Source: Zootoca vivipara
Lineage: Eukaryota
NCBI RefSeq assembly: GCF_963506605.1
Contig: NC_083277.1
Span: forward strand, 19,716,001-19,780,000
Reading direction: 5' to 3'
Length of the DNA: 64,000 nucleotides
Positions 50,965-63,648 of this stretch are shown one piece after another. The notes beneath the pieces were generated by a model. The model was not told the origin of the DNA, did not search any database, and saw only the letters and a program-made list of their open reading frames with translations. How positions within the stretch are numbered: the first letter of the stretch is position 1; every line of letters starts with the position of its first letter. Made by a program: the position numbers and the translations under genes.

Positions 50965-51400
50965 CTGGATCATCACCTTGTTGTGGTGAGTGGGCTTGCA
51001 TGTTCCTATGACCCTTGTGAGCAAAGCCGTTGGGAATCTCGGACTCCCAGCAGGACTCCCAGCAGGGTCACCCAATGCAGTAAGGTCAAGGGGAAGGAGC
51101 TAGAGAAAGAATGATCCAAGAAGTCCTCCATGGCAGAACAGGCGGATGATAACAAGCGGTATGTTACAACGACTGTGAAGGCGGACGAAGGCTGCAGCAG
51201 ATAGGAATCTACCGGTTTGTTGTGACTACTTCATGCCATCGCAACAGAGCCCCACTGCGAAGACTGTGCGTTGGTCAGCGTGCACTGATCTACACACATA
51301 AAACAAAACCACGCACAGGCGTCTTCCAAAAACCCAACCCAACCATGTTTATGGAAGACAATCTTACTCAGCTACGAGTAATTGCCAAAGAATAATAATA
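50965..51400 (+). mobile_element. Short non-autonomous retroposon, RTE-like 5' UTR plus (AAT)n tail
   Basis: Starts ...TCACCTTGTTGTGGTGAGTGGGCTTGCATG; tail AATAATAATA; TSD ATATATATG at 50956-50964 and 51401-51409. Confidence 0.55.
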
Positions 51401-52135
51401 ATATATATGGATATATAGAAAAGCAGTAGTGAAAAGCCAAAGCATTTTTTTCATTAGTAATTCGTGTTTTATAGATATATAAAGGAGAGAAGTCTACACT
51501 GCTTTACCCCCCCCCCAGAAGAGTGCATTATCCTGAGTGCCAGAGGCAATCATTGGCAAGCGATTCAATGGGTGGGTACTGCCTCTTCTGGAAAGATAAA
51601 TGCTGAACACAGTGGCTTAGTGCTGCAAAGAACATAAACCATGCAGCATGAGGAACGCATGCATCCCATCAGAGTTAATGGGAGTGCAGCACGCCCGCCG
51701 ATTTCAGTAGGAGTTGGGTGTGCCTAAGCTTTTTCCAGCCTGGACCTCAAGCCAGCCATTGACTCGCGTTGCCATGGCACAGCCATGCGTACGCAATTGG
51801 CCTGCTGGTTCACAGCCTGCGGAGGTTGCATTTATCGGGGCAAACATAAACTCTAGAACCGAGGTTTCCCTCGGTGCTACCTTCATTGCTGCACAGCACA
51901 AAGAGTTCAAAAAAATTGCTTCTGTTAGACCGTATGAGGTGTAAAGGAAGCCTCTCCCTTTCACGGCCTTCAGCAGCAGCTCTGTGAGCATCCGGCCAGT
52001 AAGGGGCGAGATGCTTCTTCCTCTCCGCAGCAAGAACCTGGCAGAGACCTGCTTCTGGCTGTCAAAAGCCATGACTTCCACTGGACCGGGGCAGGCGGTA
52101 CCTGCTGAGTTGAGGCAAACGCTTCGGATGCCTTG

Positions 52136-52978
52136 TCACTGCTTGTTTTGGTCCTGCGGCAAGGCGAGGCCCAGAAGATCAAGGGTCCTCAGGAAAAAAG
52201 GTGGCGGAGGAGCCGTGAGCACAGTGCGGGACGAAGGGGAGCCGGCGGCTGGGAGGAGGAGCTGGTGCAGGTGCAGGTGGAGAGGCAATCGGTGTGCCAG
52301 TTGCTGCTGCAGGCGCAGCTTCTTCAGCAGAGCATCTTCTAGGACCTGTCAAGAGGGTGGGAGCATCATCATTACAACTTTCTACAGGAAAGAGCACAGC
52401 AGTCCTTATTTTACTGGGGCAGGCTTCCTCAAACTCGGCCCTCCGGATGTTTTTTGGCCTACAACTCCCATCATCCCTAGCTAGCAGGACCAGCGGTCAG
52501 GGATGATGGGAATTGTAGTCTCAAAACATCTGGAGGGCCGAGGTTGAGGAACCCAGCTCTAGCCCAAGAGAGGGCGCCAAGTCTCATGTTTTTCCTTGCC
52601 AAGCTTGGAAGGTTCTCGTGTCCAAGCACAGTAGGAAGATCAACTGAGTTCCAAATCAGATGTGGTGCGGAAGATCTTACAGTCTGTTTCTCCCTTTGAT
52701 TTTTTTTTAAATAAAAAAATACCTTTACACCACCCCCATTCAGTTGCTTTGAAGATCATTTTATTCTGTGAACCGCCCTGAGATCTTATGAAGGGCAGTA
52801 TATAAATCAAATAAATAAATAAATGAGGGGTTAAACCCGTGTGGTACCCGCCTGCCCCCATTAAGTTAGTAGCAGCTTGGGGAGTGGTGGGGTCTGGGGG
52901 GAAAGCGTGGAAGCAAAGAGTTTATTTTGTTTTATTTAATAGATTTTTATACCGCTCTTCAAGGATCACAGGGTGGTT

Positions 52979-53025
<47 letters not shown>

Positions 53026-56000
53026 GGTAATAATAATGCATACCATTGTAATAAACTAAAAGGAGGCCCTATTCCAGGCATCAGAAGTTAGGAGGGAGCC
53101 AGCACAATGGAGCGGTTAGAGCAGGCACCCCCAAACTCAGCCCTCCAGATGTTTTGGGACTACAACTCCCATCATCCCTAGCTAACAGGACCAGTGGTCA
53201 GAGATGGTGGGAATTGTAGTCCCAAAACATCTGGAGGGCAGAGTTTGGGGATGCCTGGGCTAGAGTGTTCGACTAGGATTGGGGAAATACAGATTCTTGT
53301 CCATTGGGCCCCATTTTACAAGGAAAGGCTCCTGGAGCACAAAGAGAAGTTGGAAGGCTGTAGCCAGGAATGTCAGCTACTTGTATGGCCATAAAGCAGA
53401 GATGGGGAGCCTGTGGCCCTCCACATGTTGTTGGACTCCCATCAGCCCCAGTCAGCACAGTCAATGGTCAGGGATGTTGGGAGCTGTACATCTGCAGGGC
53501 ACCAGGTTCTCCGATGGATGTAAAACATGATTGCTGCTGTTATCTCCCAAGTGATATAGCCTTGGGTTGTGGAGACACAGATCTGACTGTGCGAAGGCAC
53601 TGCTCAGTCAGGTCCCTTCCTTCTATCCTGCTACATCACTCTGTAGATCCCCGACACCAAGATAGGAGGCAGCATCAGGGGCAGTTTGGTACCTGTGTGC
53701 GAGGCAGGGTACTCTCAGCTGGCAAGAGGAAGGGCTCCCCCAGGACAGTCCCCACACGGGAGGAATACACGTGGTCCCCTAGCGCAGGGCTCAGCAGCAG
53801 TATCAGGCTGACCAGGAGTTGGTTAGCGAAGGCTGCCAAAAGGACAAAGGAGAGATCAAGAGGGGGCCCCAGTGTAGACTTTCCCAACAATGCTTTACAC
53901 TGTGACGCTCACAATCCAAGCTCTTTTTAAAACCCGAGTAAGACAAATGGACAGTGTCAAAAAACGAGAACTATGACAGCCTGATCTTGTACCTAAGGAA
54001 CCCAGATTCTGCAGTCCAAAATAAGGAAAGAGGAGGAAAAAGGAAAAAGGAAAGAGGTTTGCTCCATATTAATTTGCAAAACGAAACACTTTAAATGTGC
54101 AAAAATGGCAAAAAAAGGGCAGACAAGCATTTCTGGGGGGCAAGGCTGAGATTAAAAAAAAAATTCCTTCCAGTAGCACCTTAGAGACCAACTAAGTGTC
54201 ATAGGTATGAGCTTTCGTGTGCATGCACACTTCTTCAGATACACTGAAACAGTGACTTCTGTTTCAGTGTATCTAAAGAAGTGTGCATGCACACGAAAGC
54301 TCATACCTTTGACAAACTTAGTTGGTCTCTAAGGTGCTACTGGAAGGAATTTTTTTATTATTATTTTTTCCGACTATGTCAGACCACCACGGCTACCTAC
54401 CTGTAACTAAGGCTAAGATAGTAAGAGGAAAGGAAGAGAAAGAGGCTTAAAACAAGAGAAGGAAAAGGGAAGGCAGAGAGGGACAGGGAAATCAACTGGC
54501 CATGAACCCCCCCCAATCGCCTAATTATAAAAAGACCTAGCCCAGTTCCATTTGACTTCCGGCCCATCAAGTAAACAACTATGCAGTTATGTGCAGGATT
54601 CTCTACAGCCATGAGAGCTAGAAACTTGATCAACTGTAAAAAGAAGAAGAGGCTAAGGGTTTGCTATCTCAGGTTCCAAACTGTATGCTGGGCTACCTGG
54701 AGAGCCTTTTGATCAAAACGTTTATACATATTATAAATGGGAAAAAATAGTAATCTTGGGGGAGTAGCTGTAACTGAGGGAACTCGTGTGTCAGATTCTC
54801 CGCTTGCTTTCCGTATCACAGCGCCCCTTTCCAGTTATTCCTGCGACTGTCTTTGTGCCACGGATCCTCCCTCACGCACCTGTCAGTGGCTGTAGCTGCA
54901 GCAAGGCGCAGCCTTCGCGGGAGTCCAGCACCTTATAGAGTGTCCGTGTTTTTCTAACCTCCTTCCTCTGGATGCTTCCTCGAGAAGGGGAAGCCACTGG
55001 CACCACCTGCAACCCACACAGAAGCCCGGAGTCAGTGTGTTTCCTGAGGGCCAATGGTAACTCCAGCAGCTAAAGTAATCCCTGCGCCCAGTCCAGGCAA
55101 CTGGATCCCAGCGGAGGCGAGACCAAACTTCTCAGGCTCTGCAGGGACTCCACTGAACGAGCTGCCCGCAGCAGCAGCAACAGGCAAATATTCCCTAGAG
55201 CCGCAATGTCAAATCCTCTCCCCCCTCCCTGTTAAAAAACCTGTCCTCACCAGCCTATGTTCTTCGACCCGTATCAGTTTGAGACCTGTACGAATTTCCC
55301 CTTCCAAGGCTGCAGGGATCCTGGTAGTGACGGCACTGCAAAGAGAAGGTTCTCTGTCAGGCCACACGGACACCAAACTGGGCCTACGGCGCTTTGAAGG
55401 AAATGGGGAAGGCAGAATGGGAACCTCTTTGCTGGGGATCCCCACCCTACCATAAAAACGGGAAGCGATTAGGAAGTCTTCATCTCACCAGTAGGTAGCA
55501 GCCGGATCTCCTGCTCTTCTACATCGGGCATAGAAGTCCTGGAGGCGCTGGGTGGTGCTCGGGCAACCTGAGAGGAGAACAAGTCCAGAACTCTCCCTAG
55601 GGAGAGGCAAAATCCTGTATAAAGGATATCCTTTAATAAAGATAGTCTGTCAGCTCCATCTGGTACGCAGGCTGAGACCCTACCTGCCTGCGGACTGTCT
55701 TGCCAGAGTGGTGCATGCTCTGGTTATCTCCCACTTGGATTACTGCAATGTGCTCTATGTGGGGCTACCTTTGAAGGTGATCCGGAAACTACAATTAATC
55801 CAGAATGTGGCAGCTAGACTGGTGACTGGGAGCGGCCGCCAGGACCACATAACACCGGTTACGATCTACATTGGCTCCCAGTACATTTCCGAGCACAATT
55901 CAAAATGTTGGTGTTGACCTTTAAAGCCCTAAACGGCCTCGGTCGTGTATACCTGAAGGAGCGTCTCCACCCCACCCCCCCGGTCAGCCCGGACACTGTG

Positions 56001-59000
56001 ATCCAGCACCACTGAGATCTGGCGGTTCCCTCCTTGCAAGAAGTGAGGTTACAGGGAACCAGACAGAGGGCCTTCTCGGTAGCAGCACCTGCCCTGTGGA
56101 ATGCCCTTCCATCAGATGTCAAGGAAATAAGCAGCTATCTTATTTTTAAAATACATCTGAAGGCAGCCCTGTTTAGGGAAGCTTTTAATATTTAATGCTG
56201 TATTGTTTTAATATTTGATTGGGAGCCGCCCAGAGTGGCTGGGGAGACTCAGCCAGATGGGCGGGGTATAAATAATAAATTATTATTATTATTAAACCTC
56301 TGACACAGGCCATGACACTGTCCCATGGACAGAATAGTGCCTTACTTAAAACCACCCAAGGTGGCATCGATGGCCAAAGGTCACAACAACTACAAATTCC
56401 CGCCAGTATCTGAGGCTATTTTATACACCTCTGTCATGTCTCCCCACCCTGTTGTCCCTTTTTCTAAGCGAATAATCTCCAAGCGTTATAACCTCCCTTA
56501 TTTGGGAGGTTATTTGGGAGTTGCTCCAGCCTCACAATCTTTAGACTCACAAGAGCCAATCACAAACCTTTCCCCTAGCCCTTCGCAACCATTCTTATTT
56601 TATTTTTTGCATACAGAAGTTCTGAAGTGAGTTCAGAGCACATGATCATATCCGGAAAACTGGAGCTGTAGTACAGATCAGCTGTCTAAATTCTGTGCTA
56701 TGGGTTCTCTTGCAATACGGCAGTTTAATCAGATTTTACTGAATGCCCTCTTGCTGATTATGTCAGGGCATGGTCTGAAGATGCATGATGGGAAGCTGAA
56801 GCAAAGTAGTATCTAGATAGGAGCACATGTGTGCTGCCTTGAGTTCTATGGTGGAAGAAAGGTGGGGTTTAAATAAATAAGACCCATCCTGTACACAGCC
56901 TGTTGTCATTCTCTCCAAAACCTTGTCTCCGTTTACTTACTTTACTGCAGCTTTTATCACATCGAGATTCTGTGGGAAGCCAAGCTTCTGGCTTAGATCG
57001 GGTAGAAGAGACAGCAAAGTCAGCTCCCCCGGTTTGCCTGTTGTTGGCAGAGAAGGAGGGAAATATTATCGATGCCACACAGAAGCTAGCCATTACTCAC
57101 GGCTGCAAAGAAGAGGCTTGTTCTGGCAAAGGCTTGCCAGCCCTTCCCGCCCTGGTCCAGTTTTACTTTGGGAGCTCACTTATTTACTTATTATTTCACA
57201 AAATGTATATACAGTACCACTTGATTGTAGAAAAAAACCTCGAAGCAGTTTACAAAAAAATTTAAAAATTAAAATTATCACCAAAAATAAATCACAACGG
57301 TAATTTAAAATATAAAGAAAGTTAAAACCATAATAGAATAAACTAAAGCAAATTAAAACTCATACAAACTTTCTGAACATCTGGATAGGCTTGTCTAAAT
57401 AAGAACGCCTTCAGCAGCATAGAGTGAAGGTGTCTGACTGGTATCAACAGGCAGGGAGTTCCCAAGTGTTGGTGCCCCCACACTGAAGATCAAGTTCTTA
57501 CAGACGCAGTGTGAATATTATGTGGCATCTGTAAAAGTTCCAATTCTGCCAATCAAAGCAGTTGAGCGGGCACATATGGGGTAAGGCAATCTCACAGGTA
57601 AACTAGTCAAGAGTTGTTAAGGGCTTTATATACTAATAGTAACACCTTGAACTCAGCCCAGAAGTGGATCAGCAACCAGTGCAGACCTCTGAGTACAGGT
57701 GTTATATGCTGATAAGGCCTCCCTCTTGTCAGTAATCGTGCTGCAGCATTCTGCACTAAATGCAGCTTCCGGGTCAAGCACAAGGGGAGCCCAGCCCGCA
57801 TACAACACATATTTATTCCGTGGAGTACAGGCATATATTTATGTATCTTTAAAGGCATTTCTATAATCCTGCATTTCCACTTTAAAATGCCTAAGGATCC
57901 AAACACATCAAAATGTAACGCCACATACCTGTCACAGGTAAGCCAGGGGGTTTGCTGATGGCAACCAGTGAACCTGAAATACAAAAGAACCAGTAGCCTC
58001 AGGGACAAGTGGTGAGTGTTGCAGTATTCAAACCAACTCCAAAGCATGTCAACAACCTCTGCCACAATGCAGAATCAAAAGGAGGCTGTGGGTGGAATTT
58101 TCCATGCTCGGGGAAAGGGGCTTTCTTGTATTAGCAGAAATCCCTGTTCCTCTCCACAGTCTCTATATTTCCATTCCCTTTCAAATGTATGCCCCCTTCT
58201 CCCCAGCATCTTTTTTTGATTGCAGCATTCTAAACAAAAGACACCAAATTCAGAGGGATTGGGACAGGGGTGTGGGGAGAGAGAATACATAAACACACAA
58301 AGGTGTGCTGTGCAATTATACTAGTTATGCAAACAAGCTACATTCTGCACACTTTCTGCATATGCAGAATGGGAATCCACCGCAAGTTTCACAATCCTCC
58401 GATAGAGCAGCCGAGGCTAATAGGCCAGTTATTACTCTCAACCTTTTTTCCATTCGCTTATACAAGGCCTGTACAATTAGGAAGAATGCAGCTCAATAAC
58501 CACGTATGGCAGATAAACGAAGGATGTATACATCTCCTATTTTTACTGCCTGCAGCTTGCTTGGGCTAAAAACCCAGCATAAGTTGTCAAGTGCAGTATC
58601 TGGAAAGCCATCATACATGGCTTGAGAGTTACAGTGGTGCCTCGCAAGATGAAATTAATTCGTTCTGCGAGTCGCTTCGTCTTGCGATAATTTTGTCTTG
58701 CGAAGCGTGGTTTGCCGCAGCAAAAAAACAAAACAAAAACCGCAAAAAAACGTCTTGCGAAGCACGGCCATAGAAAACTTCGTCATGCGAGTCACCAAAC
58801 ACATCACAAAACGCTTTCGTCTTGCGAGTTTTTCGTTGCGCGAGGCATTCGTCTTGCTGTACATTCAGCTTGGTGAGCACAAGTTGTGCAGGTCTGATTT
58901 ATAGCACTCTAGGGCGAGGCTATATGAAACTGTGTCTTCACTAACCCCACTAGAACACTAACTCTGTCCCAATTTGTCTACATCCTTCTTAAAATGCAGC

Positions 59001-61122: not shown

Positions 61123-63648
<2,526 letters not shown>

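Follow-up and report, generated by a model that had tools for sequence, protein, structure and literature searches.

A fold-back insertion with a Penelope-type minimal hammerhead motif in an intron of RPUSD3 in Zootoca vivipara

We analysed a stretch of 64,000 nucleotides from Zootoca vivipara (contig NC_083277.1, forward-strand positions 19,716,001 to 19,780,000), hereafter the window, in which all positions are counted from the first letter. An intron of the gene RPUSD3, read on the minus strand, contains a short insertion that folds back on itself and carries a hammerhead ribozyme motif. Very probably, this feature arose when the 3'-terminal module of a Penelope-like element (PLE), the part reaching from the hammerhead to the start of reverse transcription, was inserted in fold-back form into intron 7; it would be a dead, lineage-specific copy, a relic rather than a device of the host. 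The anatomy of the insertion, the duplication of its target, its absence in a relative, the abundance of its family, its intron and strand and the energetics of its folding were all established directly. The insertion is of a kind already described in the literature and is most likely neutral; a neutral, tolerated insertion had been the fallback of an initial annotation made from the sequence alone, and it is the outcome that the evidence favours.

The body of the insertion is a near-perfect palindrome that occupies 54153-54360. The initial annotation had described this palindrome and its loop at 54253-54258, and both stand, but the length of 200 nt that it gave is short of the actual 208 nt, and the whole unit, with a tail, measures 256 nt. 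An inverted-repeat search found the inner parts of the arms (54197-54252 and 54259-54314) to be 96% complementary and the outer parts (54153-54197 and 54316-54360) to be 98% complementary. As RNA, the palindrome folds into one hairpin of -170.3 kcal/mol, compared with -44 ± 3.7 kcal/mol for dinucleotide shuffles (z = -34). Each arm bears one copy of the hammerhead motif:

54205-54242, minus strand: intact minimal hammerhead motif; exact match and sole descriptor match in the window.
54269-54306, plus strand: twin hammerhead motif with G5>A at 54275 (CUAAAGA); one mismatch to the intact copy.

By exact pattern match, the minus strand from 54242 to 54205 reads GTAT CTGAAGA A GTGTGCATGCACAC GAA AGCT C ATAC, which reproduces the minimal hammerhead of the initial annotation to the letter. 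Helix I of this intact copy is open and has 4 bp (GUAU/AUAC), an extra A separates the core, CUGAAGA, from helix II, and helix II is GUGUG-CAUG-CACAC, a 14-mer that is palindromic throughout, starts with G and ends with C directly 5' of G12. On the 3' side of helix II follow GAAA, a palindromic AGCU for helix III, and C17. All the catalytic boxes are present in the minus-strand arm (C3-U4-G5-A6-N7-G8-A9, G12-A13-A14, A15.1/U16.1 and H17), and the cut is predicted to fall between 54209 and 54208. The plus-strand arm lacks G5, where the annotated change to A proved to be the sole difference between the two motifs. When the arms were aligned outward from the centre, four differences emerged over their whole length: G5>A, a single A/T change, an indel of 2 nt and terminal T-runs of unequal length.

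The strict descriptor used for minimal hammerhead ribozymes (min-HHRs) required 4 bp in helix I and, in this order, CTGANGA with or without one further base, 4 or more bp in helix II, GAAA, U and H. It gave one match in the 64-kb window, at this site, and none in 100 block shuffles. No further copy of the motif was found in the 64 kb with a pattern allowing 3 mismatches, with blastn-short or with a relaxed regular expression for the core. As a reading of the sequence, the term 'complete hammerhead' is valid solely under the min-HHR descriptor of Cervera & de la Pena (2014, PMC4209133). The stability of the isolated monomer is no greater than that of shuffles (z = -0.29), and in a co-fold of two copies helices III and II pair between the molecules.

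The limits of the inserted unit (54153-54408, 256 nt) are marked by a flanking direct repeat of 11 bp with 10/11 matches, the target being AAGGCTRAGAT. From left to right the parts are as follows:

54142-54152: left copy of the target-site duplication (AAGGCTGAGAT); direct repeat of 54409-54419, 10/11.
54153-54252, minus strand (the sense of RPUSD3): inverted 5'-truncated arm, tailless; from the inverted repeat and the arm alignment.
54253-54258, plus strand: 6-nt centre of the palindrome, part of the forward copy; gap of the inverted repeat, with family contigs and reads starting at 54252/54253.
54259-54360, plus strand: forward 5'-truncated arm; from the inverted repeat and the arm alignment.
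54361-54408, plus strand: one-sided 3' extension (tail) of the forward copy, 48 nt; inside the target duplication and absent in the relative, organism B (see below).
54409-54419: right copy of the target-site duplication (AAGGCTAAGAT); direct repeat, and the point (54409) at which the alignment of the organism B contig resumes.

Read in the sense of the hammerhead, each arm runs from the centre outward: the 3' ends abut the target and the truncated 5' ends meet at 54252-54258, where the forward copy extends a few bases beyond the inverted copy. Within the tail, 54365-54384 is identical at 16/20 positions to the consensus of the loose ends (at 54359) of other genomic copies, a score equalled in 0.3% of random windows, and nothing resembling this consensus was found in the left flank. 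A duplication of 3-4 nt (ATT/ATTA) at the edge of the palindrome was also considered; it was dropped, and the 11-bp duplication, which takes in the tail, was preferred. No head-to-tail direct repeat of the unit was found in the intron, where the sole direct repeat is the 14-nt palindrome of helix II, common to both arms because they are inverted.

The intron that received the insertion could be delimited by reading its splice sites directly:

53833-54879, minus strand: RPUSD3 intron with the insertion; GT donor at 54879-54878, AG acceptor at 53834-53833.

The donor lies ~470 nt and the acceptor 313 nt away from the insertion. The exons located by tblastn, the GT..AG intron and the minus-strand orientation of the gene thus bear out the placement in RPUSD3 intron 7, with the intact hammerhead on the sense strand, that had been proposed at the outset; the number 7 holds if the unmapped N-terminal 46 residues of the Pogona vitticeps protein used as reference form one exon. 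Also borne out, by the hairpin fold and by the order of the arms in the pre-mRNA, is the claim that the antisense of the intact copy comes first and would lock it in a duplex of ~100 bp.

Sequencing reads were compared over 51250-57249 for two RNA runs and one DNA run of an organism A and one DNA run of organism B, 6% of each run being read. In organism B, whose flanks are ~5% diverged from the window, one contig of 1,030 nt (depth 15) covers 53447-54115 and 54409-54734, with 25 letters joining these two parts as opposed to 293 in the window. The shortfall of 268 compares with 267 expected for the insertion plus one copy of the duplication, and the right boundary, 54409, is the first base of the right duplication copy. 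On this alignment, the orthologous site in organism B is empty. A species-private insertion with a decaying core, the outcome that the initial annotation had named as arguing against a host function, is therefore what we found. Over ~98 nt, 2 substitutions separate the two arms; this is below the ~5% between organisms A and B and fits an insertion after these two organisms split.

The family to which the insertion belongs was apparent from the same reads. Contigs of organism A break at the element (54179 and 54381), as expected because it is a high-copy repeat. In both species the summed word depth, which is not a copy number, is 4e5-1e6 on the element vs ~10-40 in the flanks, and this indicates that the family is very abundant in both genomes. 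In many DNA contigs of both species, the antisense arm is linked at 54242, where the hammerhead has its 5' edge, to assorted points of the sense arm between 54276 and 54312; the contig sides are short, and these junctions are only suggestive of other fold-back copies joined at different positions. Forward-arm contigs and reads of both species continue upstream of 54252/54253 with a common sequence (...CACTATATATAAGGGTCTG), so that each arm is a fragment of a longer element and has lost the 5' part. Moreover, TT is put in behind 54196 in 101/161 and 146/220 family RNA reads. Since most family reads have these two extra bases, the 'intact' arm has itself lost 2 nt relative to its family.

The motif has close counterparts among PLEs. 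Min-HHRs were defined for the terminal repeats of these elements: their helix I is short (4-5 bp) and open and their helix II is long, a conserved base between 9 and 10.1 stays unpaired, there is a G10.1-C11.1 pair, and loop 3 is missing while 15.2-16.2 is palindromic, so that helix III forms between two copies alone (Cervera & de la Pena 2014, PMC4209133). All the sequence traits given in that paper are found here: the CUGANGA and GAAA boxes, the unpaired base (an A), the G10.1-C11.1 pair, the long helix II, the open 4-bp helix I, the lack of loop 3 and the palindromic AGCU. The initial assignment to the Penelope-type minimal hammerheads, whose palindromic helix III needs a partner copy, is thereby upheld. 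Most min-HHRs are solitary remnants of truncated PLEs, they occur in reptiles, and pairs on opposite strands, 100-700 bp apart, sometimes occur (PMC4209133). The pair in RPUSD3, known from its sequence, differs in that the motif ends are just 26 nt apart and belong to one continuous hairpin. A full-text literature search found no paper that prints the exact sequence of the motif. Cleavage of single min-HHRs was undetectable, and dimers cleaved poorly (PMC4209133). The single sense copy in RPUSD3 almost certainly does not cleave, because it has no partner for a dimeric helix III.

The architecture of the insertion also has precedents. PLE insertions have lost much of their 5' part, often lie next to an inverted copy that is likewise 5'-truncated, and bear a tail of 30-40 bp at just one end (Craig et al. 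2021, PMC8557442); the passage of Craig et al. on this point credits the architecture to Evgen'ev & Arkhipova (2005). The reconstituted PLE protein of the green anole cuts and extends both target strands, and it begins reverse transcription at two internal positions, one on each side of the tail (Frangieh et al. 2024, PMC11167929). The insertion in RPUSD3 shares the strong 5' truncation, the head-to-head inverted copy, the tail at one end only and the target-site duplication, and its layout can be likened to the extension of both cut target strands from internal start sites. It differs by being an extreme miniature of ~100 nt per arm, with no open reading frame (ORF), no pseudo-long terminal repeat (pLTR) promoter and a tail of 48 nt instead of 30-40; moreover, the PAc element of Anolis prefers ATT, whereas the target here is not notably AT-rich. 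The inverted copy, the one-sided tail and the target duplication, together with the longer copies of the family, fit a truncated PLE copy.

The following course of events would produce this structure. A PLE enzyme would have made a cut in RPUSD3 intron 7 that was staggered by 11 bp, and reverse transcription would have been primed from both sides toward the centre, leaving the 3' ends of both copies outward. The inner start site would have given rise to one copy and the outer one to the other, hence a 48-nt tail on one side only, and both complementary DNAs would have halted ~10-18 nt upstream of the hammerhead before being joined. The priming on two strands, the joining and the absence of cleavage are steps that we infer. 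The hammerhead motif would be a leftover of the RNA of the parent element, the arms would zip into the ~100-bp duplex in the RPUSD3 pre-mRNA, and both G5A in one arm and the 2-nt deletion in the other would be ordinary decay after insertion.

Two further features of the unit were seen. An ATG lies in loop II of the hammerhead, and its frame is open to the end of the arm (54287-54349, plus strand, MHTKAHTFDKLSWSLRCYWKE...), likewise in the other arm; judging from the sequence, an arm may contain the first codons of the ORF of the parent element, up to the start site of reverse transcription. In the published PAc element of Anolis, the ORF likewise starts in helix II. In RNA of the gene's sense, the outer edge of the insertion (54350-54368, minus strand) reads AAUAAUAAUAAAAAAA, with an AAUAAA hexamer just upstream of the hairpin that could in principle be an intronic polyadenylation signal. 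Such hexamers are frequent by chance in AT-rich introns.

Several points weigh against a truncated PLE copy that is now dead. The inner ends of the arms are 8 nt apart, and a truncation so nearly equal is unexplained by independent priming alone; a snap-back or template-switch step in the joining is possible. The empty site depends on a single short-read contig, whose letters were unread. Rfam hammerhead models (Hammerhead_1, _3, _II, HH9 and HH10) gave no match at gathering in the window and none at E<=10 on pieces of 321 and 57 bases, so that the Infernal search suggested by the initial annotation came back empty; the miss is expected because the motif has neither a helix III hairpin nor a closed helix I, but by the models' own measure the motif still fails. 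No ORF for a reverse transcriptase or a GIY-YIG domain is linked to the copy or present in the 64-kb window, and we therefore infer the PLE parent from the type of the motif and the architecture. The PAc hammerhead, given in the supplement of Frangieh et al., differs in sequence from the motif in RPUSD3, and the element here is therefore another PLE family. Finally, RNA depth was zero in the intron flanks in the two runs, so that cleavage or editing at the locus may have escaped notice.

Among the alternatives, it is unlikely that the ~100-bp intronic duplex acts as a double-stranded RNA substrate that is edited by ADAR or diced, with or without an effect on RPUSD3. ADAR typically acts on long inverted pairs of transposons within introns, and here the hairpin is near-perfect (-170 kcal/mol) and bears a generic likeness to models of long microRNA precursors (58-65 bits). 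However, these matches are far under gathering (65.1 bits vs 211 for MIR8562, 58.7 vs 90 for MIR1222): no covariance model of a microRNA precursor matched at gathering, and the generic long-hairpin matches fell on both strands. Nor do the RNA data speak for such processing. With a depth of 0 in the intron flanks there are no locus-specific RNA reads, and 86-91% of the RNA reads on the element run into unlike sequence, in both orientations, and therefore derive from other copies. Over the 6-kb stretch, A>G and T>C changes made up 55% of transitions in RNA vs 49% in DNA, which is no clear excess, itself a weak negative. Any processing would be a passive by-product common to thousands of sister copies. 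A bolder version, in which the fold-back micro-insertions of the family form a large class of ~100-bp intronic hairpins that are edited or diced, and in which the young RPUSD3 copy measurably alters pre-mRNA processing or is now and then cleaved as a dimer in trans with other transcripts of the family, is in our view very unlikely; if true, it would mean a lineage-specific change in the expression of a mitochondrial pseudouridine synthase.

The initial annotation had gone further and suggested a folding-dependent intronic switch: selection would keep the sense hammerhead, which would cleave the RPUSD3 pre-mRNA whenever the hairpin fails, be it through co-transcriptional folding, a helicase or destabilisation by ADAR. 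Such a switch would make sense of an intact core on the sense strand of the gene and a mutated one on the antisense strand, and the motif does sit in a true intron, 313 and 470 nt from the splice sites. Nevertheless, we consider it extremely unlikely, and this claim found no support. The insertion is absent in a relative ~5% diverged, it belongs to a very abundant family that seems to insert repeatedly as fold-backs, and decay has reached both arms, the sense arm having its own 2-nt deletion relative to the family. There are just 2 substitutions between the arms; that one of them hit the ~15-nt core is unremarkable, and which arm was affected is a coin toss. Energetically, enforcing hammerhead helices I and II in a 236-nt RNA costs +67.5 kcal/mol vs the hairpin, the equilibrium probability of a helix I pair is 4e-47, and the antisense arm is transcribed first, which means that the sense arm can pair while it emerges. 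With one sense copy per transcript and no second one, there is no dimer in cis, and the published min-HHR monomers do not cleave. The only lizard PLE hammerhead tested, that of the green anole, cleaves only with its own protein present, is dispensable for insertion and shows no RNA-seq ends at the cut (PMC11167929). Among the family RNA reads there were likewise no piles of read ends at either cut site (54208/9 or 54302/3), a weak negative. A host function would be surprising, and nothing that we found points to one.

It is hardly conceivable that the unit is a fold-back DNA transposon (a miniature inverted-repeat transposable element) with a fortuitous hammerhead-like motif: the almost perfect palindrome and the short target duplication would suit one, but the unit lacks symmetry, the 48-nt tail being present on one side alone and lying inside the duplication, family copies run upstream past the inner end of the arm with common sequence, as expected of a truncated piece of something longer, the putative fold-back junctions of other copies fall at many positions, as in independent truncations and not in fixed inverted repeats, and the motif has all six of the PLE min-HHR traits that are not part of the descriptor, with 0 chance matches in shuffles.

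Two known groups of hammerhead-bearing sequences were compared with the truncated PLE copy. Animal non-LTR (long terminal repeat) retrozymes (Cervera & de la Pena 2020; Li et al. 2026, preprint, 10.64898/2026.07.22.740005) are similarly short and ORF-less, have type I hammerheads and kinship to PLE pLTRs, and leave monomer derivatives scattered in genomes, introns included. They differ in being head-to-tail tandem units that each have a hammerhead, which allows dimeric cleavage and circular RNA, whereas RPUSD3 has an inverted pair only. A retrozyme was rejected, as there is no tandem repeat in the intron and no other copy in the 64 kb. The amniote intronic hammerheads HH9 and HH10 are reportedly conserved across amniotes, with full helices and activity as monomers. 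They resemble the motif here in being sense-oriented in an intron of a host gene (De la Pena & Garcia-Robles 2010), but the present motif is lineage-specific, minimal and masked, and has no match to HH9 or HH10 of Rfam.

The identity of the host gene was settled by a phmmer search of the full library, cluster names and tblastn, the exons being searched singly against the reference protein. The ORF of the last exon (52139-52348, minus strand) matches RPUSD3 of Pogona vitticeps (XP_020651111.3) with 72% identity (E 9.6e-22, phmmer), a protein that carries PseudoU_synth_2 (PF00849), and tblastn of this protein against the window gave seven colinear minus-strand blocks:

59372-59232, 57971-57927, 57059-56916, 55598-55248 (two exons), 55006-54881, 53839-53690 and 52357-52142, minus strand: tblastn blocks of Pogona RPUSD3.
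54880-55006, minus strand: exon upstream of the insertion, Pogona residues ~206-247; tblastn 81% identity, E 2e-15.
53693-53832, minus strand: exon downstream of the insertion, Pogona residues ~246-295; tblastn 74% identity, E 1e-14.

Other searches were less informative. Pfam gave no match on single RPUSD3 exon ORFs, a protein atlas search returned weak PseudoU_synth_2 leads alone (0.76-0.77), and a PDB sequence search returned noise only. A regular expression for the RluA-type HRLD..TSG motif found none encoded in the gene region at 42-63 kb; the exon that corresponds to the catalytic motif (55488-55649, minus strand) reads ...PRESSGLVLLSG. Strand-specific RNA coverage at 51450-52249, with the first mate on the plus strand only and a depth of 1.6-4.4, extends over and past the RPUSD3 stop and is consistent with a minus-strand 3' untranslated region of ~700 nt. 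The internal exons at 53.7 and 54.9 kb had almost no reads. The downstream neighbour is JAGN1, with a large coding exon at 63058-63648 (plus strand; Pfam Jagunal, E 1.7e-45), and a GC-rich stretch at ~60.9-61.8 kb may be a promoter common to JAGN1 and RPUSD3.

Other repeats lie nearby. Two pieces of another hugely abundant short repeat (word depth 9e5-1.8e6, hundreds of RNA reads) are found at 52452-52551 and 53132-53257, and in both species DNA contigs and a few RNA reads join 52471-52476 to 53174-53182, skipping ~702 bp. Either a later insertion may have divided a single element or the copies may both be partial; the interval between the pieces includes a long (ATT/TAA)-type microsatellite at ~52970-53038. 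Within RPUSD3 introns, ORF fragments at 55552-55917 (plus strand) and 57607-58065 (minus strand) have a common motif, LDYCN...L..QNAAARL...HITPVL, that looks like the C-terminal part of ORF2 of a long interspersed nuclear element. The first of them lies in a very high-copy stretch (55650-56450) with a summed word depth of up to 2.4e6.

All together, the insertion in RPUSD3 has little discovery value, but it is a clean and fully delimited example of a PLE insertion: the target is duplicated, the truncated copy is accompanied by an inverted one, the tail is present on one side and a relative has the empty site, in the layout predicted by two-strand priming in vitro (Frangieh et al. 2024, PMC11167929). 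If its hairpin is edited or diced, it would be one among thousands of passive substrates. The insertion could serve as a template for annotating the many similar hairpin-hammerheads in this genome.

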